Of a DNA stretch of 64,000 nt, positions 2,955 through 53,792 are shown in pieces. The translations under genes were made by a program, and so were the position numbers. Location: sequence record MW349128.1; one strand, given 5' to 3'. Numbering within the stretch: position 1 is the stretch's first letter; each line of letters starts with the position of its first letter. The notes under the pieces were generated by a model that had not been told where the DNA came from, searched no databases, and worked only from the letters and a program-made list of their open reading frames with translations.

Positions 2955-5900
2955 ATGCCAAAAGAAATAGATTTAACTTCAGAAAAATTTAAAGATTATT
3001 CATATAACGAATTAAACTCAAGAGGTTCACAATTAAAAGATGGTAATTTAGATTTAGAATTTGAATTAGCTTCAGTTAAAAAATACTTTTTAGATAATGT
3101 AAATAAAAATGTAAGATACTTTAAAACTTATAAAGAAAAAATTAACTATTTAGTAGATAATGATTATATTGATGGAGATATGATCAAAAATTATGATTTT
3201 GAATTTATTAAAGGATTAATGAAAGAATTAATGGCTTATAAACATAGATTCACTCGTTTATTAGGAGCTAAAAAATTCTATGAACAGTATGCAATGAAAG
3301 ATGATGCAGGAGAAATCTTATTAGAACTATATGAAGATAGAATTTTATTTGTAGCTTTATATTTAGCTGACGGTGATGAAGAATTAGCTAGAAATATTGC
3401 TAATGAAATTATTACAGGAACTTTCCAACCTGCCACACCAACATTCCTTAATGCAGGTAGAGTACGTTCTGGAGAATTAGTAAGTTGTTTCTTATTAACT
3501 ATGGAAGACTCTTTATCATCTATTTATAGAAATATCTCTAATGTAGCTCAATTAAGTAAACGTGGTGGAGGCGTAGGTAAACTATATACGTTTCATTAAG
3601 ATTTTTGAAAATTATAAATCTTAAATGATACTAATGCCTACGAAAAATCGTGTGAACTCATACTAAAGGGGTGTCTAATTATAATAATTAGGCTAACGGT
3701 CATAGCAGTTAATTATGCTGGTAAGAGAGACTAAGTCCTATTAAATTGATAGGATAGAGTTAATACCGTGCCAAGCTTTATACTATTCATAGCTTCTAGA
3801 TGGGAGCTTGATAAAATGAAAGAAAATGAAATATTTAAACAATTAGAAGAATTTCCAGACTATGATTTTGGTAGTCATGGAACTATAATATCTTATAAGA
3901 CTAAAAATCCTAGAAAAATTATACCCAAGATTGATAAGAATGGTTATCATGAAGTAGGATTGAGAGATTATACAAATAAAAGAAAATACAGAAAAGCACA
4001 TAGACTTATTCTATTAGCACATAATTATATAGAAAATTCAGAAGATATGCAAGTAAATCATATAAATGGTAAACCAGATGACAATCGTTTATCTAATTTA
4101 GAATGGTGTACATCTAAAGAAAATATGAAACATGCATATAATATTCTTAGTAAAAATAAAGATAATAATAAATTTAAAATAGAAGTTTTGATTAAAGATA
4201 AAAATGATAATATTTTTAATTTTGAATCTATGAGTAAAGCTTCAGTATTTATCAAAAGTTCTGTTGGTGGTCTAAGATCTTTCTGGGTTAGAAGAAAAAG
4301 ACCTACAAATGAATTTATTAAATATAAAGATTATGATATAATGTTTAAGCCTAGTGAAAACTGGATTAAAGAATATGGAAAAGAAATTGTTTAAAGTTAT
4401 GAATAGTAAATTGAAGGTGTAGAGACTATCGAAAAGAAAGTTTAATTACTTTACTTAGTAGAGTAGGTCAGAGATTAGTACTGATCGAAGTGCATGGCAT
4501 ATTATTTTAAATAATATGAAGATATAGTCCACTCATTATAGAAATATAGTGGTTAAAGTGATTAGTTTAAGTAATTTACGTGCTGACAATGATCCAATTA
4601 AAGGTGTTGAAGGTGCAGCTTCAGGTGTAGTTCCAGTTATGAAAGTATTTGAAGATACTTTATCATATGTAAATCAACTGGGTTAATTTTAATGGCTCAG
4701 TATAAATATTGTTAATTGCTGGAAAAGTTTACAAGCTTAATCAGCATCAATCAAGATGATTGTTCAACGACTAAATATAATAATACTTATTAATAGTATA
4801 AGATATAGTCTAATCTATATGAATTTCATATAGTTAATATAAATGCAACGTAATGGAGCTGGAGCTCTTTATTTAAATATTTTCCATAAAGATGTAGTAA
4901 AATTCTTAGATACTAAGAAAGAAAATGCTGATGAAAAAGTAAGATTAAAAACTATTTCATTAGGTTTAACAGTTCCAGATAAATATTATCAATTAGTTAA
5001 AGAAAATAAATCATTATATACATTTAGTCCATATGACATTAAAAAATATTACGATTTAGATTTCGATAGTATTGACTTTAATACTTATTATGATATCTTT
5101 GTAGATGATAAACGTATTAGTAAAGAGAAAATGTATGCTCGTGATTTAGAAACTACTATTAGTAAATTACAACAAGAATCTGGTTATCCTTATATCATTA
5201 ATATTGATACAGCTAATAGAGCTAATCCAATTAGTCATGGTACAATTAAAATGAGTAACTTGTGTAGCGAAATTCTACAAGTACAATACCCTTCATTAGT
5301 TGACGATAATCAACAATATGTTAAAACAGGAACAGACGTTTCATGTAATTTAGCTTCAACTATTGTACCTGGTTTAATGAAATCAAAAGACTTTGGTAAA
5401 TCAGTTGGAACTATGTTAAGAAGTTTAAATTCAGTAGCAGAAAAATCTAATATTGAAGCTGTACCTACAGTTAAGAAAGCTAATGATCTATTCCATACAG
5501 TTGGTTTAGGTGCAATGGGATTACACACTTATTTAGCTGAAAACCATATTCAATATGGATCAGAAGAATCTAAAGACTTTACTAATATTTATTTCATGTT
5601 ATTAAACTATTGGACATTAGTTGAATCAAATAAAATTGCTAAAGAAAAAGATGAGTCATTCTATTTATTTGAAAAAACTGAATATGCTGATGGCTCTTAC
5701 TTTGATAAACGTTATATTGGTAAAAATATTCAACCACGTACTGAAAAAGTTAAAGAATTATTTGAAGATATCTTTATTCCATCTGATAGTGATTGGGAAC
5801 AATTAAGAAATAATATTGTTATGGACGGTCTATACAATCAAAATAGATTAGCTGTAGCACCTAATGGTTCTATTGGTTATGTTAGAGAAGTATCACCTTC

Positions 5901-6300
5901 AATTCACCCTATTGTTGAATTAATTGAAGAGCGTGTAGAAGGTAAAACAGGTACTACTTTCTATCCAGCACCAGGTATTACACCAGACAACTTTGAATAC
6001 TTTAAGAAAAATGCATATCAACTGGATATGAGAGATATGATTGATTTATATTCAGAAGCTCAATATCATGTAGACCAAGGTATTTCAATGAATATTTACT
6101 TAATGAATGAACTTGATCCAGATATATATGAATGGAAAAAAGATTCTTTAGATAAAGAAACTACTACTCGTGATATTAGTAGATTACGTAACTATGCTTA
6201 TAGTAAAGGTATTAAATCTATGTATTATACTCGTATTTATTCACCAGACCATGATTCTCAATCTCAAGGAATAGTTGAATGTGAATCTTGTTCTATCTAA
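2955..6300 (+). CDS. nrdE: Class Ib ribonucleotide reductase alpha subunit, spliced: join(2955..3578,4561..4683,4846..6300), 733 aa
   Basis: Motifs FQPATPTFLNAG, SCFLL, GGGVG|ISLSNLR, NQLG|QRNGAGA, SNLCSEILQ, C-terminal CESCSI; the joins restore the frame at U|...G| boundaries. Confidence 0.93.
3579..4560 (+). mobile_element. Group I intron nrdE-I1 (982 nt) encoding an HNH homing endonuclease
   Basis: Interrupts GGGVG|ISLSNLR; 5' exon ends in U, intron ends in G; core elements GAAGGTGTAGAGACTATC and AAGATATAGTCC; P9 hairpin with GAAA loop; P1 pairing not clean. Confidence 0.88.
3816..4394 (+). CDS. Intron-encoded NUMOD4-HNH homing endonuclease (likely start 3816)
   Basis: GYHEVGL...KAHRLILLA...VNHINGKPDDNRLSNLEWCTSKENMKHAY; GGAG SD before ATG 3816. 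Confidence 0.9.
   Translation: MKENEIFKQLEEFPDYDFGSHGTIISYKTKNPRKIIPKIDKNGYHEVGLRDYTNKRKYRKAHRLILLAHNYIENSEDMQVNHINGKPDDNRLSNLEWCTSKENMKHAYNILSKNKDNNKFKIEVLIKDKNDNIFNFESMSKASVFIKSSVGGLRSFWVRRKRPTNEFIKYKDYDIMFKPSENWIKEYGKEIV
4684..4845 (+). ncRNA. ORF-less mini group I intron nrdE-I2 (162 nt)
   Basis: NQLG|QRNGA restored; P1 ACUGGGU/GCUCAGU with U-G wobble; AATTGCTGGAAA, AATCAGCATC, GTTCAACGACTA, AAGATATAGTCT; ends in G. Confidence 0.9.
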
Positions 6301-6314
6301 TTGGAGGAAATTAT

Positions 6315-6533
6315 ATGACATTAAAAGAAAAATTTGAAAGTAAATATAGAAATTTAAATAAAGAACCAGAAATTTTAATTGTAGTAATTAAACTACCAAG
6401 TGGAGCTAAGGAAGTAATTTCCAATAGCTCTGACTTGGATAATAAAGTTCATTATTACTTAGAAAATTATGATGATCAATTTAGACATGTTAGAGATAAA
6501 AAAGTAAAGATAATTGATTTTATATTAGTATAA
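6315..6533 (+). CDS. Hypothetical protein, 72 aa (start after GGAGG SD)
   Basis: ORF between nrdE and nrdF. Confidence 0.75.
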   Translation: MTLKEKFESKYRNLNKEPEILIVVIKLPSGAKEVISNSSDLDNKVHYYLENYDDQFRHVRDKKVKIIDFILV

Positions 6534-6554
6534 AGAATAAGGAGAGTTACTTAG

Positions 6555-7628
6555 ATGACAACAAAAGGAAATTTCTTAACAAGTAGTAATGATAATAAAA
6601 GTTATTATAGTCCTATGAATTGGAATAAAGTAGACGATTATGTAGATTTAATGACATTTGATACTTTAGTATCACAATTTTGGACTTCAACACGTATTCC
6701 AGTTTCAAATGATATTAAAGCTTGGAATGGATTAGATGATAATACAAAAGATGTAGTTAATAAAGTATTTGCCGAATTAACTACTCTTGATACACTTCAA
6801 TCACGTGAAGGAGGAGATGCTTTACTTCATCATGCTCTTACACCTATGGAAGAAGATGTATTAAACAACATCAGATTTATGGAAAGTATTCACAATCGCT
6901 CGTATAGTACTATTTTTACTACTTTGTTAAATTCAAAACAAGTAGATGAAAACTTCAAATGGGTAGAAGAAAATGAACATGTTCAAAAGAAAATTAAATT
7001 GATTAATGAAGCTTATCAATCAGGTGATATCCTTAAAGTGCAAGCCGCTTCAGTATTCTTAGAGTCATTCTTATTTTATTCAGGTTTTTATACTCCATTA
7101 AGATTAAAAGATAGTCTTAAAAGTGTATTAGAAATCATTAAATTAATCTTAAGAGATGAGTCACTTCATGGTTCTTATATTGGATATAAATTTGGTAAAC
7201 GTTATGAAAAATTAGAAGAAAATGAACAAAACGAAATTAAAATGTGGGTAACTAATTTACTATTTGAACTTTATCAAGTTGAATGTGAATTCATTGAAGA
7301 AGTTTATACTGAAATTGGTTGGGCTGAAGATGTTAAAATATTCGCTCAATATAATGCCAATAAAGCTTTATTAAATCTTAAATTAGATCCTATTTTCGAA
7401 ACTACTGAAGAAGATGTAAATCCAATTGTAATGGCTGGATTAAAAACTTCTACTGGTAATCATGATTTCTTCTCTCAAGAAGGTAACGGATATCTTATTG
7501 GTAAAGCTGAAAATACTAAAGAAGAAGATTATGATTCAATTGATGTTAATGAACTTAATAAGAATATCATTGATTCATATAAAGATAAAGCAGATGATAG
7601 ATTTAGTCATAGTTACTATATAGATTAA
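6555..7628 (+). CDS. nrdF: Class Ib ribonucleotide reductase beta subunit
   Basis: QFWTSTRIPVSNDI, TTLDTLQ, MESIHNRSY (radical Tyr), ESFLFYSGF, RDESLHG. Confidence 0.95.
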   Translation: MTTKGNFLTSSNDNKSYYSPMNWNKVDDYVDLMTFDTLVSQFWTSTRIPVSNDIKAWNGLDDNTKDVVNKVFAELTTLDTLQSREGGDALLHHALTPMEEDVLNNIRFMESIHNRSYSTIFTTLLNSKQVDENFKWVEENEHVQKKIKLINEAYQSGDILKVQAASVFLESFLFYSGFYTPLRLKDSLKSVLEIIKLILRDESLHGSYIGYKFGKRYEKLEENEQNEIKMWVTNLLFELYQVECEFIEEVYTEIGWAEDVKIFAQYNANKALLNLKLDPIFETTEEDVNPIVMAGLKTSTGNHDFFSQEGNGYLIGKAENTKEEDYDSIDVNELNKNIIDSYKDKADDRFSHSYYID

Positions 7629-7655
7629 TAAACAAATGTATATGATTAATTTGCA

Positions 7656-7686
7656 GCCCTAACATTTCTAACTGAGATGTTAGGGC
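7656..7686 (+). terminator. Intrinsic terminator after nrdF
   Basis: GCCCTAACATTTC-taact-GAGATGTTAGGGC + ATTTTTT. Confidence 0.8.
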
Positions 7687-7713
7687 ATTTTTTACGCACG
7701 AAAATTGAGCTTT

Positions 7714-7725
7714 AACATTCTTATA
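7714..7725 (+). promoter_or_regulatory. Putative late promoter AACA-N6-TA
   Basis: AACAttcttaTA; same pattern upstream of several structural genes; matches the AR9 late consensus as recalled. Confidence 0.5.
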
Positions 7726-7736
7726 TTTATGAAATA

Positions 7737-8510: not shown

Positions 8511-8530
8511 TAGAAAGAAGTGTTAATAAT

Positions 8531-8725: not shown

Positions 8726-8759
8726 TTGCATTGTGTTTCATATATACTTCTGTACTTTA

Positions 8760-8852: not shown

Positions 8853-11800
8853 ATGGCAGACTTTATGTATCTCCATCCTTCTGTACAAACTCAAGTTAAC
8901 TCTTATCAAAATAACTTCCAAACAGCTGAAGGTCCAGTGACTTTATTTGCAGCTGACACATTTGAAAAAGGTAAAGATGGAGTTATTGACTTTGTTGGTA
9001 CTGAAGAAGAATTTATCTTTAAATATGGTGAACCAAATTACGCAAAATACGGACAAACTGCTTACAACATGGTAAACTGGTTACGTTCTGGTGGTCAAGC
9101 TTACGTATTACGTGTACTACCTCAAAACGCAACTTACTCTCATGCCATTTTAAATGTTCAAAGTAGAGTTCAACGTAAAGGCAAAAAAGTTTTAACAGAA
9201 GCAAATGAATTAGTAGAAATTGATGACGTTAAAATTCGTCCAACTATTGCATTTGTTAAGAAAAATAATAGAAATATTGAAGAATTAGTAAATGAAATTT
9301 CATTAGACCGTACTGCAGAACAAACTGTAGATGGATATAATAATAATTTCTTATTATTAGCTTATCCAAATGGTCGTGGTGAATCTTATAACGATCTAGG
9401 AATTCGTTTAACATTAAATACTTCTTATGACACTAGTGGTCGTACTGAACGTGTTTATAATTTAGAAGTATTAGATTTCGATGAATTTGGTAACGTTAAT
9501 GTAATAGATGGACCTTTCTTAGTAACATTTGATACAGATTCAATTTCTGATACTGGTGAATCAATGTTTATCGAAGAAGTAGTTAATCGTTATTCTAAAT
9601 ATATCAATATTAAATTTAATCTTGAAAATTTCCAAAGATTAGCTGAGCAAATTAATCCATATGTTCATCCAGCTAGTATTGATGTTATTTCTGGACGTTC
9701 TAAAGTAGGTTTAGACGGAAATCCTGAAACATTCTACTCTGAAATTACTAAAGATTCAGAAGATGTTCATGTTTCTTTACAACGCTACAACAATAAAGGT
9801 ATTCCAGTAACTATTAATGGACAACCAGTATTAAATAAACCTGATTTTAACGATCCAGTTGAAAATGCTTTAATTTCATTAGATAATGGTATTCGTGAAA
9901 AATCATTTGTAACAGATTCTGACCGTTTATCTTACATGAGAGATCAATATAAGACTCTACGTTCTGATAAATTCTCTGAATTCAAGTCAATCTTAAATAA
10001 AATTATCGTACCTAATGGTGGACTATTTGTTGATGATGCAGGAGATCTTCCTAAGACAATTAAAGAGAATTTAGTTTCTGATAAATTAACTCAAGAAGAT
10101 GTTACAGCTAATATTGAAGATGAAGAAGCAGTAGAAAAAGAATTAGCTGAAAAATTCAAACCTTCTGAAATTAACTTTGGTGGTAAACCTTCAGGTGTTG
10201 TATCTGAATTGGTTGAAAACTATAAAACTTATTTCGAAGATTCTAATGAAGAAAACTTATCAGCTGTATTAGCTTCTTCTGAAGAAATTGGTTCTTTACT
10301 ATTAAATGAATTCTTAGATAATGGTAATAAACTTAATGCAGCTTATGAATTAGTTTATAAATCTAATTCAGGTATTTCTTCAAATCCTAAATATCAAGCA
10401 GATGTTAAAGAATTACGTGATGTTCTTTCTCAAAAAGACCAAATCCGTATCTTTGGTATTCAACATAAATCTAATATCTTAGATATTACAAATGATATTG
10501 CTGAATTACGTATTGGAATGAAATCTGTAACTAATATTGAAGGTATGAGTAAAGTATTAAACGATACTGAAACTGAACTTAAATATGTTACTGATAATTT
10601 AATTCCTGCTGTTAAAGAAGGATTACCAGAAGATGCTATTAAATTCATTAACACTGTTCCTGATGAAGATGGAGACGGTGAACGTGAAATAGTTTCTCCT
10701 GAATCTATGTTAAACCGTATTGCAGATTGTCAATTATTGATTGATGATGTTCGTGTAGGTTTAATGGAAGATAACGCAACTAATCGTGAAGAAGTTTATA
10801 CTGCATGTAATGAAATTGCTAATCAATTAGTTGACTTAATTAATAGAGCTGTTTCAGTATCTTCAACTTATAAAGTTGCTCGTGCTGTACGTATTGCAGC
10901 TAACACTATCTATTATGATATTGCTATTTTCCGTAAGAACATTGATGAAATGATCCAAACTCGTTCTAACTATACTGAACGTGATATCACTTCAAATGCT
11001 CATCAAAATATTGAATTGGCTGTTGCTAACTTGAATAAAGCTAACTCTAAATACTTCAATACTAACCTTATTGATGTAGCTAGTCCGGTTAAATTCTTAT
11101 TCGGTTCAGATGGTGATTTCTCTTATGAAAATGATTTATCATATAGTGAACGTAAGAATGCAGTTAATCGTGAATTAATTAAAGCTTATAAAGGTTTAAT
11201 TGATGAAGATTTAACAAATACAAAAGCTGTTCCGTTTGATGTTGTTCTTGATGCTCGTTATTCTAACGAAGTTAAGTTCGCTATTTCTGAATTAGCTAAA
11301 AACAACCGTAAGGACTTTGTATTCTTAGCTGATACTGTTACTGATCGTTACCCAGTTAGTCCTGAAGATGCAATTAAATGGAGAAAAGAAGAATTTGCAG
11401 TATCTTCTGAGTACACAGCTATTTACTCTCAAGACTTAACTTACTATGATGAGTATACTGGTAGAGACATTCGTTTCACACCAACTTATCGTTTAGCTTC
11501 AATGATTCCTTATCAAGCAGTTAATTCTGGTTTACACTTCCCTATTGCAGGACCTAGACGTGGACTAGTAGAAGGACATAAAGCTTTATCATGGGCTCCT
11601 AATGAACCTTATAAAGAAAAACTTTATACTTCTAAGATTAACTACATTGAAAAAGATATTGATAGAACTAAATTTGGTTCTCAAATGACATCTATTAAAT
11701 CAGATGGTCCATTATCTAACCTTAATAATATCTTCACATTAAATCAAATTAAACGTGATGCTGAAACATTAGTTTCTGATTACCAATTTGAATTAAATGA

Positions 11801-15236: not shown

Positions 15237-18200
15237 TTAAGTAAACATATTCAATCCCGGATTATTTGGATGGGGATTATATTGGGATTTATATCCATAA
15301 ATTGCATCATCAATTTGTTGTTGAAAAACTCTTCCTTTAATTACTTGCATACTTCTAGAATATTGAGTTTTCATATTAATTTGAGCTTTATCAATAATGG
15401 ATAGTTGATCTCTTCTAATTCCTGCTAAGCAATCAATATAAGATAATAATCCTGTATTAAATTTCATTCTTTGGAATGATTTAGAAGCCATTAAGTTTGG
15501 ATACATATCTCTAATATTAATAGATACAGTAATTTCTCTTGGGAAACCATCTGCAGTCCATGTACCTTCTTCACCACGAACTATATTCATTGAAGTTATT
15601 ATACCTGTATTACATTCAAATCTACCAGGACAATTAGCTCTAATAATAAACGGTTGCTTATAAGAGAATATTGAATCTTGTAAAGGTAAAGCTAATACTA
15701 ATAATGAAAGAAATGGTAAATATACATTGTCAAATATAGATTGTGGATCTCCATAAGCACTATAGAATTTAAATTCTAGATTATAAGTACGGTCAAAAGT
15801 TGAATTCATCCAAACCTGGTTTGTTAAATCTTGATTTTATATATTAAATATAAAGGCAAGACCTTGTATAAAATACACTTGGCTCAGTGACTAACGTATA
15901 AGGGAACCCTTATACTCCTTGTAAAGCTAATCGGACATTAGCTTATCACCCGTTTATCGTCTCCCGCTACCCGCAGGCGACTCTCATATCTTTTATTTTG
16001 TGAGATTAAACATATTTTAAATCTAGAATATTTTTAGCTGCATTTAAATCTCTATCAAGAACTACATCACAATTAGGACAATCATGAGTATCATCACCTA
16101 AAACTAATTTCTCTTTATTAGTTCTAACATAACCACATGATGAACATGTCTGTGTAGTCTTTTTCTTAGTAATAATATTTAATTCATTATCATAAAAATT
16201 AGATTTAAATTTTAATTTTTCTAAAAAATCATACTTACCAAATCTTCTATTAGAACGTCTAAGATTTCTGAATCTATCAGATATTTTATGTGGATATGGT
16301 TCTATATTGATTACTTTATAATTTTTAACTAACCAATTAGTAATTTTGTCCCTATGATCTTCCAACATATCATATTCTCTATTATAAGACTTTCTTAATT
16401 GTTTTAAAAGTTTGTAATATGATTTTGAATAATATTTTTTTCTATCTAATTTAGATTTAATTTTTTCAGTTTTTCTTTCTTGTTTCCATAGAATATTCGG
16501 TATTTTAAATTCAAATACTTGACCGTTTGAGTCTACAGCAGCTAAAGGAGTTTTTATCCCCATATCAATACCAATTGAATAATTATTTTCTCTCTGTTTC
16601 TTATAATTGATTATCTCATAAGTTATAGAGATGTAGAATTTTTCATTCTTTCTGCTTATGGTGTAATATTTAAAATTAATATCGTTAGAGTTAATAAATT
16701 TTAAAGATTCCTTAGTTTTAATAACAAAAGGTTTAATTCCTTTCATTGCAGAAACTCTTATCCATTTTTTAGATAAAAATTTTACAGGTAAACTTAGTTT
16801 ATCTTTAACTATAAATCTAAATGAATCGTTAGAATATTTTTTCTTTTTAAATTTAGGTTTAAATTTATCACTATCTATATAATTTTTAGATTTTCTAGCT
16901 TTACTCTGCATTTCATAGTATTTAGAAAAAGTCTGATTTAGATCTTTTAAAGCTTCTTGTCTAACCATACTATTAACTTCATAAAGATAAGGATAATTTC
17001 CAGAATTTTGAATTTCGTTGTTTAATTTCTTTTGAAAATCAAATCCACTAAATTTCTTATCATCATCAATATTCTGATAATCTTCTAAAGCCATATTCCA
17101 TACTTTTCTTCTTACACCAAAGCATTTATTGAAATAATTCTTTTGGTCTTGATTTGGGTATATTCTAGTTTTGAAAGATTTAACTATTCCTTTTTTCATT
17201 GTTTAATTTCACCTCCTAATCATATTATATAAATATGTTAGGAAATTCCTGATATGAATTTTTTATCAGTATTTTATACAATCTCTAAATTAGTAATTTA
17301 GAGCACAGACTATATCATACTCATTGATATGAGTGAATATATTTAGTCGTTGGACAAGTCTTATTGACTTGATGCTGATTGAGATAATAATCTATTCCAG
17401 CAATTAATATTCTTTGCTAATTAAAATTACTTTTAATAGGGACTATTTGTGTGAATAATCCGGATAATACATTGATGCACCATCTAAATGTTCCATAAAG
17501 TTACCTACAATACCACCAATAACTGGCATATTTGCTACCATATCATTAATACTATCTTTAATAGTTCTAGTAATTTTACCTAAAATAGAAGCTCCACCAA
17601 TACGAGCCATTTCTTTTTGTTCTCGTATTTCTTGGTTTTTATTATTAACTTGAGAAGCAATATCAGATTGATTATATTCATGCATTGCAGATTCTGATAT
17701 ACTAGTTGATTTATCTGCATAGTAAGCTAGTCCATAGTTTTTATCATCTTGTAGAGATCCACCTAGATCAAATGATCCTTTTAAACCCATTGATGCATGA
17801 ACTTGAGAAGCCATAGTTTGTACGTATTTATAATATTCAGCCATTTTAGGTTCAAAGCTTATCATACGACCATCTTTAGTATTACCGATACCTACTAAAG
17901 ATAAACCAGAGTTTACTAATCTATCCATTCCTTCACCAAAACTCCATAATTTACCTTCTCCTGGTTTACCAAATAATTTACCATTTAATTTAGGCATACC
18001 CGGCATTATAAATACTAAAGGTAAATCTAATTCAAATGTTCTTTTATATATTCTTCTATTAGGATCATCTAAACTAGAATAGTACATAGGCATTCCAAAT
18101 ACATCTAGTTCACCTTTAACATTTCTTAATTGTTTTTTATCTTTAGCATTTTTATCTGTTAAATATTCAGTTGCTTGTCTTTGATTACCCAAAGCATCCA

Positions 18201-35305: not shown

Positions 35306-37534
35306 TTAGTCATCATATTTATCTCTATATTCATAATAACTATCATATTGAACTTCTAAACCTGAGAAAGCTGAAATGAATCCCATATGCCCTTCCATAT
35401 TGATATTTTCAATATCTTTAATATCAACATCAGGTTCTCTATAATTAAAATCTTTATTTTTATCTATAAAAATTCTAATTCTATTTTCATTCTTTATAAT
35501 CTTAATATATTTATTATTAATATCTAAAGGTACATGATTAGTTACATATAGCTGTTTTTCTTTTTCATCTTGGAATATTTCTTTAGGTTTTCCAAATACT
35601 TTATCAATTTCATAGAAACCAGTTTTCATTACACGATCAGGATCATCCATCACATCTTTATCATCTAAATCAAAATAAGGTACATCCCAATTTTCTTGTT
35701 GAGAAGCTATCCACAACATATAACCTGAGTTAAGATTAGAATTATAATCAAATACAATACCTGCTCCACCAGTATTATTTTTATTAATAACTTTAAATGT
35801 CATAATATAATTTTTAGGGAATTTGAAATTTTGACTATATACATAGTTTAAAGAATCATCATCAAATTTAGTTGTTCCATCTTTAAAACTAATGTAACCA
35901 TAGTTTCCTAATGATTGTTTAGTAATTGATTTATTGTAAAATCCTGTATATGTCTGTGTATCAACTGGATAAGTTCCATAAGAACGTAAAGCAACTATCG
36001 TAGGATTAAAGAAGATTCCTGAACGACTCTCATCAAAGAAATACTGTGACCCATCTGGATTTTTTAATGAATAGTTGTATTCCAATTCTACATCATACCA
36101 ATCTTCTTTAGTCACTATAAATGTGTTATTAAATTCTTCATGACTAATTCCAGCTATTTCAAGTTCATCAAGACTAACTTGTATAATTTCATTTGGATCA
36201 ACTTCATTATCAAAATTAGTTAATTTAACTTCTATCTCCATTTTTTTAATATTCTTCATATTATACATCATATGCTTAAGATAAGATTTTTGACCTTGAG
36301 TATTATAATTTTTATTAGTTGAAGGGAATATGTTTTCAACTTTCTTAACTTTACCAGTATTAGAAGTTAATGTAATATCATAAACTAATTTAGCTGTTGG
36401 ATGATTATTATCTTTAAAATTAGTTGAATAACCTAAATTAAATGCAAAGAAATCATATTTAAGTAAACGCTTAATATTCATTCTAGGATTTTCATTTTCA
36501 TCATCTAAAGTTATCTTGACAAAAGAAGCTGAATCACCTTCTTCTTTATCTGATTTACTGAACATATCTCCTTTAACTTCATAAAGACCAGTTTCTTTAT
36601 TAAAACTTACCGAAGATAATCTAGTTGATTCTAAATTAGAATGCTGTACATCTTCATCATTAGCTTTTCTTAAATCAAATATAGCAGTTGGAGCTTTAAA
36701 TTGGTAATTTTCTGTAGCATTAATTATATTAAACCCTTTACTATCTGTTATATTTAATTTAGAAGTTCCGTTTTGTAATGGAGCAAATAAGTATTTTTCA
36801 CCAGGTTTGAAATACATCTTACCTTTAAATTTACGAGAGAAACCTTTCTTATAAAAGATATGAGGTAAAGTTTTTAAACCATCATTATTAAGTGTAAAAG
36901 GTTCAACTAATTCTTTATTATCTGTATCAGGTCTATAGAATTTGTGTTCATGAACTTCATATCTTTCTCTTAAATAGCGATCTGAAGTAATATCATTCAA
37001 TTTATCATCAAAGTCTAATTCAGGTACAAAAGGTATAATTTTAGGATTTCTGTATTTAGGTGTTACTCTGTCTGAATCTTCTTCAGTACTTTTAATCATA
37101 TGTTTATATATTGGTTTAGGATTAGTTTCAGATCCTAATACATCGTTTTCACTATTGATAATCTTATTTAAATCGTTAATTACAGTTTCTGTGAATACTT
37201 TAACAGTATCTGTATTAAATTGATCCACTGTCTGCATATCATTTACGAATAATAATAAATACCATAGATCTGTTGTTCCATATAATTCATTGGAAAGATA
37301 TTCAGGTTTATAATGATATGCTTTATCTAATTCATAATCTATCAAATCTGCCTTTAATACATTTTCATATTTCTTTAATAATGGAAAACCGAATACTGAT
37401 TGCTTTTCAAATATATACCATTCAGATATATTATTTAATAATAGTTTATTTGATTTGGAATATTGTATTTCTTCAGCCATTTCAGGAACATCATTCTTTC
37501 CCATATTCGAGTTCCCTACGTTACGTATAAGCAT
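35306..37534 (-). CDS. Baseplate wedge (T4 gp53/LysM-like) N-terminus fused to a large beta-rich region, 742 aa
   Basis: YHYKPEYLSNELYGTTDLWYLLLFVN; C-terminal GGAGIVFDY...GYMLWI lectin-like; AACA-N6-TA motif at 37568-37579. Confidence 0.55.
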   Translation of the reverse strand: MLIRNVGNSNMGKNDVPEMAEEIQYSKSNKLLLNNISEWYIFEKQSVFGFPLLKKYENVLKADLIDYELDKAYHYKPEYLSNELYGTTDLWYLLLFVNDMQTVDQFNTDTVKVFTETVINDLNKIINSENDVLGSETNPKPIYKHMIKSTEEDSDRVTPKYRNPKIIPFVPELDFDDKLNDITSDRYLRERYEVHEHKFYRPDTDNKELVEPFTLNNDGLKTLPHIFYKKGFSRKFKGKMYFKPGEKYLFAPLQNGTSKLNITDSKGFNIINATENYQFKAPTAIFDLRKANDEDVQHSNLESTRLSSVSFNKETGLYEVKGDMFSKSDKEEGDSASFVKITLDDENENPRMNIKRLLKYDFFAFNLGYSTNFKDNNHPTAKLVYDITLTSNTGKVKKVENIFPSTNKNYNTQGQKSYLKHMMYNMKNIKKMEIEVKLTNFDNEVDPNEIIQVSLDELEIAGISHEEFNNTFIVTKEDWYDVELEYNYSLKNPDGSQYFFDESRSGIFFNPTIVALRSYGTYPVDTQTYTGFYNKSITKQSLGNYGYISFKDGTTKFDDDSLNYVYSQNFKFPKNYIMTFKVINKNNTGGAGIVFDYNSNLNSGYMLWIASQQENWDVPYFDLDDKDVMDDPDRVMKTGFYEIDKVFGKPKEIFQDEKEKQLYVTNHVPLDINNKYIKIIKNENRIRIFIDKNKDFNYREPDVDIKDIENINMEGHMGFISAFSGLEVQYDSYYEYRDKYDD

Positions 37535-45985: not shown

Positions 45986-45998
45986 AAATTATTATTTT

Positions 45999-46406: not shown

Positions 46407-48697
46407 ATGACAACAGAATTAAAGAATAAAGAAGAAAGAAAAAGAGCTTTAACTGGATATTTAGAACAATTGGTATGGATGGTTCAAAAGAATAATCCTG
46501 ATTTTGATAAAGAAGAAATATTAAAAGAATGTAGAGAATTTGTAAAAGAAAATGTTAAACCTGTTATGACAGAGGTATCAGGTCAAGAAATGAATGTTGA
46601 TTCTTTATTACGTACAGTTATTAATTCAAATTTAATAGTAACTGGATCAGGTTCGATTTATCAAACACAATCACAAAGAAAAAATTTAAATGCAGAGATG
46701 TTAAAAGACTTCATTGATTCACGTAAAGTAGCTAAACATAATATGTTTATAAGTAAAGGTGTAGACGATGTTAAATATCATAAATATATGAATGAACAAA
46801 AAACAATTAAGATCTTGGCTAATAGTTACTATGGTGCTATGATACAAGGAAATAGTATTTTCTATGATCCTTATTCAGGACCTGCTATCACATATAGTGG
46901 TGTTGATATTGTTACGACTTCAGCAATAGCTTTAGAAAGATTTATAGGTAGTAAAATATTCTTTATGAATATTAGTGAGATTTATAATTATATCGTAAGA
47001 ATATGTCAAGAAGAATATAAAGATCATGATATTAAGATAAATTCAGTTCCTACTGATAATGAAATATTAAAAGGTTTATTGGATAACGTAGAATATAATT
47101 TCTCTGAAGATGAAGAAAATGATTTAAAAGAATTCTTTAGTAATTTAACTCAAGATGAGAAAAATAGAGTTTATTTTAAAAATAATCTTTATGGTTTATT
47201 AGATCACACTGATATATTTGATAATAAAATTAGTAAAATGACAGGTAGAGAAGATTTCTTAGATCCGAACGAACCACCTGAAGATATGATACCATTATTA
47301 GATGAATTATTTGATATATTAGAAGACTGGGTTATTTATAATTATCAAGATTACAATAGAATGTATAGAATGAATTATAAAAAACGTAGAAGTGTACTTA
47401 CAATCGATTATGATAACATGGTCGCTGCTTAAAGTAATTTAAGTTGATTCACATTATTAATTGCTGAGAAAGTATTTATTAAATTAATCAGCATCAATCA
47501 ATATGATTGTTCAACGACTAAATATAATGATACTCATAAAGAGTATATGATATAGTCTATTTTATATTTAAAAATATAATATTAAAGACAGATAGTAACT
47601 TCGTACATTTAGATCCATTATATCAAAAAATGAAAGAAAAGAAACCTGAAGATTTCCCTATTGCAGAAAATGGTTTAGAAGATAAATTAGAACAACGTGT
47701 AGGTAATATATCTATTATTAACTATCAAATTACTAAATTGCTAGAATTATCTTATCATAGATTCTGTAAAGATTTAGGATTAGAAGATGAACATTTAGGT
47801 GTTATATCTATGAAAAATGAGTATGTAAATGCTCCAGTATACAGTAATGTGTATTAGTAAATATTATTAATTGCTGAGACAAAATAAAATTAATCAGCAT
47901 CTTCAAATAATGAAGTTCAACGACTAAATATAATAATTCTTAATAATAAAGAATATGATATAGTCTAGTCTTATATTTAAAATATAAGTATAAACGTTTT
48001 ACTTGACAAACAGTTAACAACAGATAAAAAGAAAACTTATGCTTCATCAGTAATTCAACAAGAGGGTAATTTAGTTCAACCACCAGACTTAGATGTTAAA
48101 GGTATGGCTATTAGAAAAGTTAATACTAATAAACGTATTAGAGAATTATTTACTGAAATATTACAAAAAGATATCTTAGAAAATAAAACTGGAATTGATA
48201 GAATTGGAATTATACGTAAATATAAAGAAATTGAAGAAATGATTAAAAAATCATTAGAGAATGGTGATATTGAATTCTTAAAACCTGGTAAAGCTAATAA
48301 CGCAGAAGTATATAAAGATCCTTATACACAAATGAATTATAGAGCAGCTTTATCATGGAATTTAATGTATCCAGATAAAGAAATATCTCTTCCAGCAAAT
48401 ATCTTAATGGTTAAATTAAATATTAAATCATTTGGAGATATTAAGGATAAAGTTGATGATGAAGAATTATTAGATAAATTTAGAGAAGTATTTAGAAACG
48501 AAAGATTAGTTAAAAATGGAATGAATGTAATTGCAGTTGAAGGTAATACAATTCCTGAAGAATTTAGACCTTTTATTGATTATGATTCAATGATAGAAGA
48601 TCATATTAAACCAGGTAAAGATATTATTGAATCTATTGGAGTTAAAGTGTTAGAATCTTCAAATAGTTCTTTCGTATCAAATATGGTTAAATTTTAA
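46407..48697 (+). CDS. Family B DNA polymerase, split subunit with motifs B and C, spliced: join(46407..47408,47588..47822,47997..48697), 645 aa
   Basis: KILANSYYG (motif B); splicing restores VLTID|TDSNF (motif C) and MKNE|FLLDKQLTTDKKKTYAS; no motif A seen. Confidence 0.88.
47409..47587 (+). ncRNA. ORF-less mini group I intron polB-I1 (179 nt)
   Basis: P1 CGAU/GUCG; P2 with GUAA loop; P3 CATTAT/ATAATG; P7 GACTA/TAGTC; ends in G. Confidence 0.92.
47823..47996 (+). ncRNA. ORF-less mini group I intron polB-I2 (174 nt)
   Basis: P1 GAGU/GCUC; P10 UUUAC/GUAAA; same core motifs; ends in G. Confidence 0.9.
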
Positions 48698-48720
48698 AAA
48701 AAAAAAGGAGGGTATATTTA

Positions 48721-49224
48721 ATGAGATACTTTTTATTTAAACCTAAAAAGTTTCAAGAACTATTTGAAACTGAAAAGAAATTATCATCTGTCTTTGAATA
48801 TTATAGAGATATGAAAAAAGATATTGTATTTAAAGTTGATGAAAATGATGATATTTTTATGATGTTATATAATATTTTAAGTGATGAAATATTACCTTTT
48901 ATAAGATGTAAAGTATACAATAAAAAAGATGGAGAAATACTAAAAGCATCAGAATTATATGTCCCTATTAGTTTGGATATTCATAAAGAAATAAATATAA
49001 ATAAAAATAGTATAGAGTATGATTCTAACATGCCTTATAAACATGGTTTAATTGAATGTCCATCTATTGACGAAGATAATACTAACAATTATCTTCGTTT
49101 AAATTTTCAATATAATGACAAAGATGATTATTTTTATATTTACTTAAATGATATTTATGCTATTTTTGAAGAGATAGATAAAACAGAATTTATGAAAATA
49201 GAAACTAAAAAGAATTTTATGTAG
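48721..49224 (+). CDS. Hypothetical protein, possible distant member of the C-terminal-tag family
   Basis: Starts MRYFLFK, ends FEEIDKTEFMKIETKKNFM. Confidence 0.75.
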   Translation: MRYFLFKPKKFQELFETEKKLSSVFEYYRDMKKDIVFKVDENDDIFMMLYNILSDEILPFIRCKVYNKKDGEILKASELYVPISLDIHKEININKNSIEYDSNMPYKHGLIECPSIDEDNTNNYLRLNFQYNDKDDYFYIYLNDIYAIFEEIDKTEFMKIETKKNFM

Positions 49225-49283
49225 ATTGAAAAAATTTATTATTTTCATATAAAAATTCTTGCTTAATTTTTAATTTTATGTTA

Positions 49284-49296
49284 AAATATATATTAT
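49284..49296 (+). promoter_or_regulatory. Putative early promoter motif
   Basis: AAATATATATTAT. Confidence 0.55.
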
Positions 49297-49361
49297 AAAA
49301 ACGAGAATATGTCACTATTAAAATTAAACTTATTCTTAATAAATTTGGAGAGTGAAAAGAA

Positions 49362-50672
49362 ATGGCAAAACAATCAGATGTATTTAGTAAAAAGAAATCA
49401 TTATATAGAAAAAATGGTAGAAAAATACCTTCTAAGTTTAGAAAGATGGATGTAGATGGTACTTGGTTTTATAGATTTGATCATAATAGATTTATCATTG
49501 ATAATTTAACTAGATTTATGGAAGATAAAGAATTAAAAAAATTATTAAATGATTATAGAAATAATTATGATAATAAAGAAAAATTTAATAATGATTGTTA
49601 CTTCTTTGAATTAGATAAAGATATACCTAAATTAAATAAATCTCAATTAAAGATATTCTTCACTCATTTATCTAGAAAACATATTGGAAAAGATTTCTTA
49701 AAAAATATTACTTTGAAAGATAATTCTAAATTAGAAATAAAAGAATTTGATGATTTAGAAATATGGTCAAGAGAACCTGATAAAGAAGAAGTATATGACG
49801 TTGGTTATCTTGATATGAAAGATTATAGAATGATTGCTCATATTGATCATGAAAATGAAGAAATTGTTATTCATACAGATATTGAAGAAGAAAATCCAAA
49901 ATCATATAGTACTTTAATTAGTTCTTTAGAATCAATTGAAATTGATGATTATTATGAAGATATTAGCTCTGATGAAATAAGAATTAAATTAAATGACTTT
50001 AATTTAAGAAAAGTATTTAATAAGACTAATAGTAAAATATTTAAAGTTATTTTACCAGTTACTTATAATTATGAAGGTTTTGATGATCAAGTGTCCTTCT
50101 TATTTGATAATTTCAGTAAAACATATATTAAACAACTTGAAAAAGAAGAATACGATAAGAAAATGCCTATCGGAGGACAACCTTATCATTTAAGACCTGA
50201 AAATAGACCTTATTATGCTAAACGTAGAATAATTAAAGATTGGAATATTTATGAAATATTTGATGAAGATAAAGATGGATATAAATTATTCAGTGTTAAA
50301 GATGATCAAGGGTTTATTTATTTAATATACTATATTGGTAAGAATTATCATGGTAAAGGTATAATAGTTAACGGTAAAGAATCTCCAGAACTTCAAGATC
50401 CGTCTAATTATAGAAAATCAGTTAAATTAAAAGATATTTATTACAGTGTATTAATTTCACAAGCTAAATATAATCTAATGAAGAAAAATAAATTTGATAT
50501 TTATACAGCTTTTGATACATCCAACCCTAAATATATGACAATTTCAGATGAAGAAAATATTCATACAACTGATTTCTTAATACCTGAAAGACCATTTAAA
50601 ATTAGACAAACTAAATTTAGAGAAGATAAAATATCAAATTTAAAAGATAAATTCGTAGAGGAGTTTGAATAG
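49362..50672 (+). CDS. Hypothetical protein, 436 aa
   Basis: GGAG SD, long ORF. Confidence 0.8.
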   Translation: MAKQSDVFSKKKSLYRKNGRKIPSKFRKMDVDGTWFYRFDHNRFIIDNLTRFMEDKELKKLLNDYRNNYDNKEKFNNDCYFFELDKDIPKLNKSQLKIFFTHLSRKHIGKDFLKNITLKDNSKLEIKEFDDLEIWSREPDKEEVYDVGYLDMKDYRMIAHIDHENEEIVIHTDIEEENPKSYSTLISSLESIEIDDYYEDISSDEIRIKLNDFNLRKVFNKTNSKIFKVILPVTYNYEGFDDQVSFLFDNFSKTYIKQLEKEEYDKKMPIGGQPYHLRPENRPYYAKRRIIKDWNIYEIFDEDKDGYKLFSVKDDQGFIYLIYYIGKNYHGKGIIVNGKESPELQDPSNYRKSVKLKDIYYSVLISQAKYNLMKKNKFDIYTAFDTSNPKYMTISDEENIHTTDFLIPERPFKIRQTKFREDKISNLKDKFVEEFE

Positions 50673-50675
50673 TAT

Positions 50676-51410
50676 ATGGAGGATAATGAATATATGTATA
50701 CAGAAGATGAAATGAATACAGGTCATATAGTTGCGGATTGTGATGAAGTTTTAGTCAATATATCGCCAAAGATAGTTCAATTAATGCATGAAGATTATGA
50801 ATATTATAATCAATTCTTTAGATTATCTGAAGATTTTGATTATAATAAACATTATGATGTAATATTAAGTAGACCTGAATACTATATAGATCAATGGTTA
50901 GTTAGAAAAGATGTTTATAATAACTTTTCAGAAAAAGAAGTTAATGAAGCAAGAGAAAGACTACAAAATGAAATTATATTTAAAAAAGATTTATATGATG
51001 AACTTCAACCAACTAATTTAGGTAGAAGTTTATCATATACCATTAATACACCGTTAATGAATAAATTAACTATCGTTACTAAAACTTCAGATAATAATCT
51101 AAAATCTAAAGAGAAGTTTTTAAAAACTTTATTTAGAGGAAGTATGGATAAAGTTGATATATTCTACTTAGAACCAGATGAGAAAAAATCTGATGTGATT
51201 AATTCTTTAGGATATGTTACTAGAATATATGAAGATGAAGTAAGTAATATTAGTGATATTATAAAGAACTGTCAAAATGTAACACAAACAGGAATTGATA
51301 TTCCTTCATTGGGATATAATCAAGATATCGATGAAGGAACGATATTAAAAGCTAAAGAAAAGAAAATTGATTTAAACTATTTCAGTTATATGGGACAAAG
51401 TATTAAATAA
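50676..51410 (+). CDS. HAD-superfamily phosphatase, 5'-deoxyribonucleotidase-like
   Basis: Motif I IVADCDEVL, motif II LTIVT, motif IV IYEDEVSNI. Confidence 0.55.
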   Translation: MEDNEYMYTEDEMNTGHIVADCDEVLVNISPKIVQLMHEDYEYYNQFFRLSEDFDYNKHYDVILSRPEYYIDQWLVRKDVYNNFSEKEVNEARERLQNEIIFKKDLYDELQPTNLGRSLSYTINTPLMNKLTIVTKTSDNNLKSKEKFLKTLFRGSMDKVDIFYLEPDEKKSDVINSLGYVTRIYEDEVSNISDIIKNCQNVTQTGIDIPSLGYNQDIDEGTILKAKEKKIDLNYFSYMGQSIK

Positions 51411-51416
51411 ACAAAT

Positions 51417-51452
51417 AATCCATGTTTGACAAATTCAAGTCAAACATGGATT
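51417..51452 (+). terminator. Intrinsic terminator
   Basis: AATCCATGTTTGAC-loop-GTCAAACATGGATT + T-rich tail. Confidence 0.8.
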
Positions 51453-51508
51453 TATTATAATTTTTTTTTTATAAAAATTGACATTGAGGAAGGAAATTAA
51501 AATGAAAA

Positions 51509-51802
51509 ATGGACATTAAAGATTTCATAATAGTTTTTTCTTTATTCTATCTTATTTTAGTTGCTATACCGTCTGTAATATTCTTAAGTAAAATTAATTA
51601 CAAAAAGAGTAATAAAATTATTATATTATTCTTTAATATAATAATCGTTTTATTTATATGTATTACTGTATTACTGTATAATTTATTTAATAAAGAAGAT
51701 AATAAAGAATCACTAAAATATTATAATAAAGAAGAAAATATAATAGATTATTATATCGAAAAAGATATTAATCCATTATTAAAAGAAAGTGATGTGAAAT
51801 AG
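51509..51802 (+). CDS. Small membrane protein, two TM helices
   Basis: Two hydrophobic stretches. Confidence 0.7.
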   Translation: MDIKDFIIVFSLFYLILVAIPSVIFLSKINYKKSNKIIILFFNIIIVLFICITVLLYNLFNKEDNKESLKYYNKEENIIDYYIEKDINPLLKESDVK

Positions 51803-51805
51803 TAA

Positions 51806-53792
51806 ATGAAAGTAGATATGATAGATATTGAACAAGTCATAACTGATACAAATGCTAAAGAAGTAACCAATCCTGTATTTTTCGATTCAGGTATACTACC
51901 AAAAGAAGATGGTTTATTTTCATATGATATATTTGGTTTAATAGGTACTCCTGAAAGAAAAACCAATTTAGGTTGGATTAATTTAAAGGATAAATACCTT
52001 AATCCGGTGGCTTATAAAGCATTAAAAGATTTAGATAAAAATATTGAACTATGTATTCAGGGTTCAGAGTATTTTAAAGTAGAAAAAGGTCAATTAGTTC
52101 CTTCAGAAGATGGAGATACTGGACTGAATTTCTTATATGAAGTATTTGATGATTTAAAATTTAGAAAGAATGATTCTCGTATTAGATCTGAAAAAATTGA
52201 TATGATTAAAAATACAGATAAGCAAAAAATATTTGTAGATAAATGGCTAGTAATACCTGCTTTTTATAGAGACTTTAATCCTAATGAAACTTCAGGAGAA
52301 ATTCAAGATACTGAAGAAGTTAATAATATGTATTCTTCTATTATACGTTCTGTAGATGCTATTAGTTTTAATTCTTTTGGTTTTATTGCTAACAGTACTA
52401 AATATAATATACAAAATACATTATTTGAAATATATCAGAAATTTACTTCAGGAGAATTATCAGGTAAAACTGGTTTTATGCAAAAACGTATATTGGGTAA
52501 AACAGTAGATAATAGTACTCGTGCAGTTATTTCTTCACCTAAAATTAATTCGAATAGATGGGATGAAATGCAGATAGAGTTTGGTGAGTTAGGTGTACCA
52601 TTAACTCAATTAGTTACCTTATTTTTACCATTCTTTAATAAGTATATAATTGATTTTATTGAACTTCATAAAGATGCTTTCCAAACAGCTACTGGAAATG
52701 ATGAGAAAGAATTATCATTAGAAGAAGTGTATGAACAATTCGATGATAAATCTATTAAGAATATGCTAGAATTCTTTATTAAAGATCCTAATGAAAGATT
52801 TAGTCCTATATATGTAAATGATAGAGAAGGTAAACGCCATAAAGTTAAATTATTTGAAAAAACTTTGGGTAGAGATTTTACTGTAATTGATTTACTTTAT
52901 ATTGCTGCAACCGAAATAGTAGAAGATAAGCATGTTATGTATTCAAGATATCCGATTAATAAAATGGTCGCTGCTTAAAGTGATTTAAGTTGATAAACAT
53001 TGTTAATTGCTGAAATACTATTAATAAAGTTAATCAGCATCAATTAAATATAATTGTTCAACGACTAAATGCAATGATACTATTTAATAGTATATAATAT
53101 AGTCTAATTTATATAATACTTATATAAATATAATAAATGCGAAAATTTCTTGAACGTAGCACCTGCTAAAATTAAAATATTAACTACTGTTGATACTATT
53201 CCAGAAATAATTTTAGATGATATAGTATTAAAAGATTACCCTAAAGTAGTAAGAGAGTATCCTGTTGATGAAGATATTTTCTTAGATACTGCAATCATAC
53301 ACAATTCATATGCTCAAGCACTTGGTGCAGATTTTGATGGCAAAATTTTATATTACCATCATTAAATAATATTAATTGCTGGAAAATCTAATAAGATAAT
53401 CAGCATCAACTTAATAAAAGTTGTTCAACGACTAAATATATTACTAAAGAAGATATAGTCTAATTATATGTAAATACATGTATATAAAATGGATATGATT
53501 TCAATACGCTCTTTATGGTCTGTAGAAGCAAATAAAGAAGCTGATAAACTTATTAATAAGAAAACTAATTACTTAAACTACACAGGAAATAGTATACGTG
53601 GAGTTGGTAATGAGAGTAAGTTTGTATGCTCTCAATAAATTTCATTAATTGCTGGAAAAACAAAATTAATCAGCATCAACTTAATAAAAGTTGTTCAACG
53701 ACTAAATATGAAAATGATTTAAATATCATAAGATATAGTCTAATTATCATAAATATATGGTACAAGCTTTATATTCTTTAACTAAAGAATAA
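51806..53792 (+). CDS. Phage multisubunit RNA polymerase beta-prime fragment with catalytic DFDGD, spliced: join(51806..52956,53140..53341,53492..53617,53760..53792), 503 aa
   Basis: DGLFSYDIFG, LSGKTGFMQKRILGKTVDNSTRAVISSP; splicing gives SRYPI|ENF, GADFDG|DMISIR, GNES|VQALYSLTKE*. Confidence 0.88.
52957..53139 (+). ncRNA. ORF-less mini group I intron rpoC-I1 (183 nt)
   Basis: P1 CGAU/GUCG; P2 with GUGA loop; P3 CATTGT/GCAATG; P7; ends in G. Confidence 0.88.
53342..53491 (+). ncRNA. ORF-less mini group I intron rpoC-I2 (150 nt), C-A 5' splice site
   Basis: Splits DFDG|D; P1 GAUGGC/ACCAUC; P10 GAUAUG/UAUAUU; core motifs present; P8 vestigial. Confidence 0.85.
53618..53759 (+). ncRNA. ORF-less mini group I intron rpoC-I3 (142 nt)
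   Basis: P1 UGAGAGU/GCUCUCA; P10 GUACAAG/UUUGUAU; P3 TTTCAT/ATGAAA; P7; ends in G. Confidence 0.9.

Follow-up and report, generated by a model that had tools for sequence, protein, structure and literature searches.

Six ultra-small group I-type introns in essential genes of the Staphylococcus jumbo phage Machias

Three essential genes of Staphylococcus phage Machias, nrdE, polB and rpoC, are interrupted by six inserts of 142-183 nucleotides (nt) that carry no open reading frame (ORF). The question raised by this locus is whether inserts so small are genuine group I introns, and whether the genes depend on their removal from RNA. Machias is a 274-kb AR9-like jumbo phage and a swine-barn isolate. 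The DNA analysed, called the window below, is a stretch of 64,000 nt comprising bases 62001-126000 of record MW349128.1 (window coordinate = record coordinate - 62000). An earlier note, made from the letters alone, had listed the six inserts, and they are confirmed at the sizes it gave, with boundaries checked against intronless orthologues. Phage S6, in which both genes are uninterrupted, was the boundary reference for the polB and rpoC introns, and the solved NrdE chains 1pem_A and 6cgl_A served for the nrdE junction. The reading preferred here, with a probability of roughly 85%, is that the six are genuine group I introns, belong to a compact phage lineage and are spliced as proposed below.

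Some of the interruptions are already visible in the public annotation. GenBank record MW349128.1 joins the exons around five of the six mini-introns, with the comment 'exon boundaries predicted based on alignment', and rpoC-I3 is the one overlooked. The exons around these five had been joined by protein alignment in Korn et al. (bioRxiv 10.1101/2020.12.14.422802), where the genes are termed 'intron-disrupted' and intron type, size and structure are unstated. In the GenBank entries of both Machias and MarsHill, the rpoC coding sequence (CDS) closes at a stop within rpoC-I3 (window 53638 in Machias), and ten C-terminal residues are omitted. The 33-nt last rpoC exon is absent from GenBank because the annotated CDS ends at this intron stop.

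Removal of the inserts restores the genes. Spliced polB encodes 646 amino acids (aa) with no internal stop and aligns to the 645 aa of S6 with one gap column, and spliced rpoC encodes 504 aa, like its S6 counterpart (504 aa), with zero gaps. The nrdE exons are contiguous on 1pem_A (residue 249, then 250-251) and on 6cgl_A (241, then 242). Read without splicing, all six introns present an in-frame stop at codon 1-12. The presence of such a stop in each insert and the restoration of conserved motifs had both been claimed beforehand, and both are borne out by products that are stop-free and near-gapless relative to S6 or the solved NrdE chains. The claim that splicing is needed for these proteins also holds, the introns being ORF-less and set within catalytic motifs of essential genes. 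Judged by the reading frames, ribonucleotide reductase, DNA polymerase and virion RNA polymerase would all require removal of these introns from RNA. The junction peptides expected from spliced rpoC are ...GADFDGDMISIR... and ...GNESVQALYSLTKE (GADFDG-DMISIR and GNES-VQALYSLTKE).

The inserts share the core of a group I ribozyme. The 15-mer GTTCAACGACTAAAT is exact at six plus-strand sites of the window and occurs once on the minus strand with one mismatch, while AATTGCTG and AATCAGCATC are found in all six introns. The list of shared motif blocks in the earlier note stands for these three and fails for one further block, as rpoC-I1 carries AATATAGTCT and not GATATAGTCT. A seventh copy of the core lies on the minus strand. 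In the alignment of the seven copies, P4 and P7 are invariant, and P3, P6 and P8 covary. Of its cells, 99.5% are paired, and compensatory changes occur in 11 of 27 pairs; with the 3' partners slid as a control, pairing drops to 24-53%. The P3 pairs quoted earlier are all correct and covary as described.

A new covariance model had been proposed as a check. This model, R1, was built from the seven-copy alignment and detects 30 cores in the whole Machias genome, with scores of 118.8 bits for nrdE-I2 and 117.9 bits for the seventh copy. In the 30 genome copies, 98.4% of cells are paired and double changes are present in 136 cells; this alignment was fitted to R1 and is hence biased towards the structure. 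Across the two alignments, compensatory changes affect 11-16 pairs, and slid partners pair in 24-54% of cells. One weak R1 match in the window (35831-35918, minus; 20 bits, E 0.33) falls within a baseplate gene that has no interruption, and was set aside as chance. Exact intron boundaries were fixed where an intronless reference existed, and the other 23 Machias copies are known as cores. The six inserts show a P3-P4-P6-P7-P8 core (P8 missing from rpoC-I2) with a P3/P7 pseudoknot and covariation, and a terminal G in every copy, and joining their exons in sequence leaves the ORFs stop-free. They are very probably true group I introns with a complete P3-P4-P6-P7 core and an IA2-like core sequence.

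The splice sites are specific to each copy. Five of the six introns have U at position -1; for rpoC-I1, boundaries placed 1 nt upstream of the naive protein boundary give U at -1 and the terminal G. Each intron has its own guide, as the earlier note had proposed, which pairs with the end of the 5' exon over 4-7 base pairs (bp) and forms a U.G pair in five (Table 1). The guide tracks the exon on similar scaffolds (GUCG/CGAU versus GUCC/GGAU). At the rpoC-I2 site, the guide and exon are GCCGU/ACGGU in the phages MarsHill and LY01, and ACCAUCA/UGAUGGC in Machias and AH12. The Gly codon in MarsHill and LY01 is GGU, which with guide GCCGU gives a normal U.G. Relative to these two phages, the Machias rpoC-I2 splice site reads as a double change from U.G to C.A. 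Such a C.A pair can reportedly stand in for U.G, according to mutagenesis of other group I introns. Other 5' splice sites with a U.G were tried for rpoC-I2, and none preserves the ADFDGD motif. The GU-rich alternative guides GUUGAUU (polB-I1) and AUCAUUAAA (rpoC-I2) were also rejected, since the upstream guide is what relatives conserve and covary. In rpoC-I2 and rpoC-I3, the six nt immediately 5' of the guide form pairs with the opening six nt of the 3' exon, giving a continuous 13-bp P1-P10. The GC content of the six introns is 19-22%.

Related phages carry the same family at varying sites. The 142-nt intron is matched by blastn at 9-32 places per record in six Staphylococcus jumbo phage records, none of them annotated as an intron. 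In the polB-rpoC region, R1 finds no core in S6, three in MarsHill, seven in LY01 and six in AH12, and identical sites are occupied or empty depending on the phage among these four and Machias. Micro-exons of 12 nt (locus L125, 10323-10334) and 9 nt (10516-10524) are present in LY01, and one of 15 nt (locus L126, 8971-8985) in AH12. They lie wedged between adjacent mini-introns and supply parts of the beta' ADFDGD motif. Exons as short as 9-15 nt, and a last exon of 33 nt, make sense only with splicing, and thus support it. The ADFDGD catalytic motif is an intron hot spot. Between two phage clades, introns at the same site are 69-86% similar and introns at different sites 64-82%. This same-site likeness, no higher than that of different sites, suggests replacement or recombination among copies.

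Table 1. Positions and predicted structural features of the mini-introns and associated elements (window coordinates)
Feature	Position	Strand	Size and context	P1, guide and P10	Other helices and remarks
nrdE-I2	4684..4845	+	162 nt, phase 0; ends AAAUG	P1 exon ACUGGGU/guide GCUCAGU	No P2; P5 5 bp, P6 6 bp, P8 5 bp, P9 8 bp
polB-I1	47409..47587	+	179 nt; interrupts polymerase motif TID|TDS	P1 exon CGAU/guide GUCG + 4 intron-side pairs	P2 loop GUAA; P5 weak or absent, no helix predicted between P4 strands (segment folding); P8 6 bp, P9 7 bp
polB-I2	47823..47996	+	174 nt, phase 1; junction NE-F|LLD	P1 GAGU/GCUC, loop GUAA	P2 8 bp, loop GUAA; no P5, 16 nt A-rich in place; P8 6 bp, P9 8 bp
rpoC-I1	52957..53139	+	183 nt, phase 2; junction YPI|ENF	P1-P2 module as polB-I1, guide GUCG	P2 loop GUGA; P5 3 bp, P8 7 bp, P9 10 bp
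rpoC-I2	53342..53491	+	150 nt; interrupts beta' catalytic motif ADFDG|D (ADFDG|DMIS)	Guide ACCAUCA, its A facing C at -1; P10 6 bp, UAUAUU/exon GAUAUG	No P2; P8 shrunk to CUAAAG; P9 7 bp
rpoC-I3	53618..53759	+	142 nt; unannotated in GenBank; junction GNES|VQALYSLTKE*	P1 UGAGAGU/GCUCUCA; P10 6 bp, UUGUAU with exon GUACAA	No P2; no P5 (14 nt); P8 5 bp; no P9
Last rpoC exon	53760..53792	+	33 nt; VQALYSLTKE + stop		Equals C-terminus of intronless S6 protein
Seventh core copy	17306..17417	-	In 'virion protein' gene	5' splice site probably after CCGGAU at 17458; guide GUCC	
TnpB-type ORF	16006..17199	-	Inside seventh-copy intron		OrfB_IS605, HTH_OrfB_IS605 and Cas12f1-like TNB domains
nrdE-I1, 3' ribozyme part	4442..4551	+			RF00028 39.0 bits, below gathering score

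Several points weigh against the group I reading. Rfam gives no match at the gathering score, and none at E<=1 on the whole window or on a 6.6-kb sub-window. The RF00028 scores are 37.7 bits for nrdE-I2, 29.9 for polB-I1, 17.3 for polB-I2, 22.4 for rpoC-I1, 34.2 for rpoC-I2 and 27.8 for rpoC-I3, all under the curated gathering score of 50; these sub-threshold Intron_gpI matches (E-values 4.6e-08 to 0.067) arise only in short local scans of 0.6-0.9 kb. The conserved U.G is missing from rpoC-I2, where the Gly codon is GGC. In the longest-run guide test, own exons have a mean of 6.3 and cross pairs a mean of 4.0, with a cross maximum of 8 in this AT-rich sequence. There is no P8 in rpoC-I2, and neither P5 nor P9 in rpoC-I3. 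The helices are short and AU-rich (19-22% GC) and a plausible tertiary clamp is limited to the P2-bearing introns, so RNA-only activity of the smallest copies under physiological conditions is doubtful. The introns of Machias and its relatives are, moreover, known here from DNA sequence alone.

As regards Rfam, the best match of every copy is Intron_gpI, and the alignment spans the P4, J6/7-P7 and J8/7-P7' consensus. The scores stay below gathering because peripheral helices are missing, not because the fold differs. In a published study, Rfam likewise failed on a related Staphylococcus jumbo phage.

The periphery is lost to a different extent in each copy. The earlier description of near-minimal cores is right for P2, which segment folding shows to be lacking in nrdE-I2, rpoC-I2 and rpoC-I3. 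It is only partly right for P5, said to be reduced to a short loop: P5 is missing in polB-I2 and rpoC-I3, is not predicted in polB-I1, and forms a helix of 3-5 bp in the other three. With P8 and P9 each gone from one copy, the reduction goes further than had been noted. P8 is reduced to C-NNN(N)-G in 3 of the 28 complete genome cores (record 51915, 115362 and 243466, with CCTAG, CTAAAG and CAAAG), and its loss is therefore recurrent and not a one-off lesion. Copies without P8 likewise have no P2. In MarsHill and LY01, the orthologues of rpoC-I3 measure 140 nt, with P2, P8 and P9 all missing. GNRA loops (GUAA or GUGA) are a feature of the three P2-bearing introns, whose P8 includes a CU:AG step; this combination would fit an L2-P8 clamp under published tetraloop rules. 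A comparison of 53374-53441 with 53647-53714 shows an identical 41-nt P4'-P6-P7 stretch in rpoC-I2 and rpoC-I3, present also in the extra intron of AH12, which hints at gene conversion among adjacent introns.

The viability of the phage, these proteins being necessary, points to splicing in vivo, and the chemistry would likewise be that of group I. Each intron would be transcribed inside the pre-mRNA, and its guide would form P1 with the final 4-7 nt of the 5' exon; in rpoC-I2 and rpoC-I3, it would additionally hold the first 6 nt of the 3' exon through P10. P4, P6 and the conserved P3/P7 pseudoknot would jointly build the guanosine-binding catalytic core. An external G would attack the 5' splice site, marked by the U.G wobble in five introns and by C opposite A in rpoC-I2. 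The terminal G would next occupy the G site, and the exons would be ligated. The in-frame stop, no more than 12 codons past the 5' splice site, may keep the core free of ribosomes. Piecemeal loss of P2, P5, P8 or P9, and of the GNRA-loop clamps with them, would have brought the introns to 140-183 nt. The family would have colonised about 30 sites, located in conserved motifs of essential genes, with turnover between related phages, probably by endonuclease-assisted homing or by recombination in co-infection.

The best surviving alternative, a serious one that falls short of an even chance, is that the introns derive from group I and are not autonomous. In this case rpoC-I2, rpoC-I3 and polB-I2 would need help from a protein of phage or host origin (for instance an RNA chaperone, a maturase-like endonuclease or the ribosome), and splicing would possibly depend on temperature or stage. 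The loss of P2, P5, P8 or P9 and the lack of an L9-P5 type clamp speak for it, as do the low GC content and the helices of 3-8 bp. Group I introns without peripheral stabilisers often require proteins such as CYT-18 or StpA. The phages form plaques at 30 C and none at 37 C (Korn et al., bioRxiv 10.1101/2020.12.14.422802). In contrast, the catalytic core is complete and conserved, and the 13-bp P1-P10 of the two smallest introns may offset the missing periphery. Activity is also reportedly retained by engineered sunY miniribozymes of about 180 nt and by constructs from which P4-P6 was deleted, and no candidate factor came to light here. A cofactor need or a temperature limit for splicing is plausible, because the smallest copies have no obvious clamps, the helices are short and AU-rich, and growth occurs at 30 C and not at 37 C.

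A second alternative concerns origin. Under it, polB-I1 and rpoC-I1 are ORF-less IStron-like derivatives, placed at ...GAU| by IS-type transposition or TnpB-guided homing and not by classical homing. An IStron joins a group I ribozyme to a transposase or TnpB gene of the IS200/IS605 or IS607 family; the ORF-less six carry no such gene, and the seventh copy alone does. This chimera extends from 17458 to about 15900, and its tail after the TnpB ORF is more GC-rich and guide-RNA-like. The seventh copy has the same core as polB-I1 and rpoC-I1 and the same P1-P2 module, plus tnpB, and the insertion point of each of the three follows xGAU. In total, Machias has three chimeras of this type, the others at record positions of about 205562-207100 and 227935-229400. 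For IStrons, both derivatives without an ORF and insertion downstream of TTGAT-like pentanucleotides are on record (PMC4227781). The 3' ends are unlike, however: those of the mini-introns are A-rich and end in AAUG or AAAG, while the chimeras have the GC-rich guide-RNA-like tail. No TnpA gene was seen in the annotation, and the likeness of targets covers merely 3-4 nt and equals the P1 requirement of the common guide. Such an origin is unlikely. The polB gene of LY01 contains a 'transposase'.

Very unlikely is a third possibility, that the introns have been co-opted as regulatory checkpoints which time or gate expression of the replication and transcription enzymes. The indications are circumstantial only, namely the location in essential genes, the weak helices and the temperature-limited growth. 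Placement in conserved motifs of essential genes is, on the contrary, what classically identifies selfish homing elements (PMC12908238, PMC4227781). Relatives without introns, S6 among them, are viable, and presence or absence varies among close relatives; location in catalytic motifs together with this polymorphism marks selfish homing elements. That the inserts stay in RNA, the genes being naturally split into separately translated fragments, in the manner of other RNA polymerase subunits of these phages, or decaying as pseudogenes, can be practically dismissed. In its favour, beta and beta' of AR9-like phages are each made from several pieces (Korn et al., bioRxiv 10.1101/2020.12.14.422802), and an ATG in frame with the following exon closes three of the introns. 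Against it, those ATGs have no Shine-Dalgarno sequence ahead of them, a 10-aa peptide and, in related phages, exons as small as 9-15 nt would be among the pieces, the breaks fall inside the catalytic motifs ADFDG|D and TID|TDS, the exons are conserved without frame drift or gaps relative to intronless S6, and the inserts carry a covarying ribozyme fold.

The family of spliced group I introns favoured here appears to extend beyond these phages. A compact P7 module (CAACGACTAAA, 12-42 nt, ATATAGTC) is present in at least 120 IMG/VR stretches and in 73 stretches of prokaryotic genomes. R1 gives 162 matches in 100 viral loci from jumbo-phage metagenomes, many of them in contigs of 200-400 kb and often spaced 170-240 nt apart. 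Arrays of R1-like cores at a spacing of 170-240 nt occur in four IMG/VR contigs (L063, 3380-3800; L068, 6700-7750; L082, 3200-4200; L061, 3250-4080), and would imply that uncultured jumbo phages contain mini-introns in series, with very short exons between them.

Further elements were observed. Two stretches of the Machias record outside the window, 2834-2942 and 3021-3129, probably represent overlooked introns whose terminal exons are short, comparable to rpoC-I3. The nrdE gene contains a different, larger group I intron, nrdE-I1 (window 3816-4551), with an HNH endonuclease ORF at 3816-4394. The rpoC gene of MarsHill has a 1.47-kb insert (locus L004, about 9080-10550) located about 10 nt downstream of the rpoC-I1 site and encoding a homing endonuclease. 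This insert was considered as an ORF-carrying relative of rpoC-I1 and rejected, as it begins with GTGCG and fits a group II intron (PMC12350094).

Novelty relative to existing annotation had been left to be checked. It holds for rpoC-I3, which is newly recognised against the public records; the other five were already exon-joined, and small introns of the gut 'Jug' jumbo phages have been published (PMC12880540). The novelty is thus moderate, and consists of a more reduced form of already known small jumbo-phage introns. A bolder proposal can be offered tentatively and is rather improbable as it stands: the copies of 140-150 nt may be the smallest natural group I ribozymes with a full core, autonomous without P2, P8 or P9 and in one lineage using C opposite A, or else they may depend on a phage or staphylococcal cofactor, with temperature-sensitive expression. 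Autonomous activity would set a new natural minimum for the fold and give ribozyme engineers a compact scaffold. Were the 140-150 nt copies to splice alone, the lower size bound for complete group I ribozymes in nature would fall by about a quarter. Such copies would reveal the peripheral helices that are dispensable in evolution, which bears on ribozyme folding studies, and would be relevant to compact self-splicing cassettes, for example for circular RNA. For annotation, Rfam-based pipelines overlook the whole family, and genes of Staphylococcus jumbo phages are consequently annotated as fragmented or with wrong ends; the same misannotation probably affects many metagenomic jumbo phages. One phage lineage unites ORF-less mini-introns, TnpB-carrying IStron-like chimeras and group II introns, and is a good system for the study of competition between mobile elements.

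T4/Twort-type introns: Among known systems, the ORF-less introns of the T4/Twort type (IA2, RF00028) resemble the Machias introns in the core signatures AAUUGC..GAAA, GUUCAAxGACUAAA and AAGAUAUAGUCUAAUC. They also interrupt nrd, DNA polymerase and structural genes, occur several per gene and have an early in-frame stop. In contrast, the Machias copies are about 100 nt shorter, and individual copies lack P2, P5, P8 or P9. Subgroup IA2 is recognised by extra P7.1/P7.2 helices, located between P3' and P8, and by core sequences; the Machias core is IA2-like, yet only 31-44 nt lie between the P7 strands. This length fits P3' and one short P8, and thus leaves no room for P7.1/P7.2.

Azoarcus and engineered ribozymes: The Azoarcus pre-tRNA-Ile intron (IC3, about 205 nt) is reported to be self-splicing. 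It is likewise a natural, compact, ORF-less group I intron and is used as a minimal model. It differs in being GC-rich, very stable and located in a tRNA, and in keeping P2, P5, P8, P9 and two tetraloop-receptor clamps. Those of Machias are shorter by 22-63 nt, AU-rich and located in mRNA, and have lost the clamps; their self-splicing is a prediction from sequence. Engineered miniribozymes reportedly include sunY derivatives of about 180 nt and a minimal P3-P9 domain. These are similar in that a core stripped of peripheral helices is still catalytic. They are, however, laboratory deletions, mostly with lower activity or a high Mg2+ demand, while the Machias introns are natural alleles of viable phages.

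Fungal degenerate introns: Degenerate 'group I' introns of 56-81 nt in fungal rRNA genes, for which in vitro splicing is claimed, are smaller natural introns said to use the group I pathway (PMC3160393). They keep only P1, P7 and P10 and have no P3-P8/P4-P6 core, whereas the Machias introns keep the whole catalytic core. A literature search on the smallest, shortest or minimal group I introns returned nothing relevant besides the Phialophora work.

IStrons: IStrons belong to IA2 and are known in clostridial phages, and ORF-less derivatives of them have been described (PMC4227781, bioRxiv 10.1101/2023.11.20.567912). The seventh copy and the two further genome chimeras are similar to them, as they join the same ribozyme to a TnpB placed after P9. 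The six mini-introns differ in the lack of an ORF and of a guide-RNA-like tail, and in their 3' ends.

Jug phages: The gut Jug phages (360-402 kb) contain 2513 group I introns with a mean of about 206 nt, at about 18 per genome (PMC12880540; 2026). Here too, many small ORF-less group I introns fragment terL, nrd and polymerase genes, and R1 matches dense arrays on IMG/VR contigs of 360-400 kb. The hosts are Bacteroides and not Staphylococcus, and the paper is without structural analysis. Compared by reported mean, the Machias copies are at or under the low end of the Jug size. Splicing of the Jug introns is backed by metatranscriptome reads in 37 of 76, and the splicing of these related small introns supports the reading of the Machias inserts as true, spliced group I introns.

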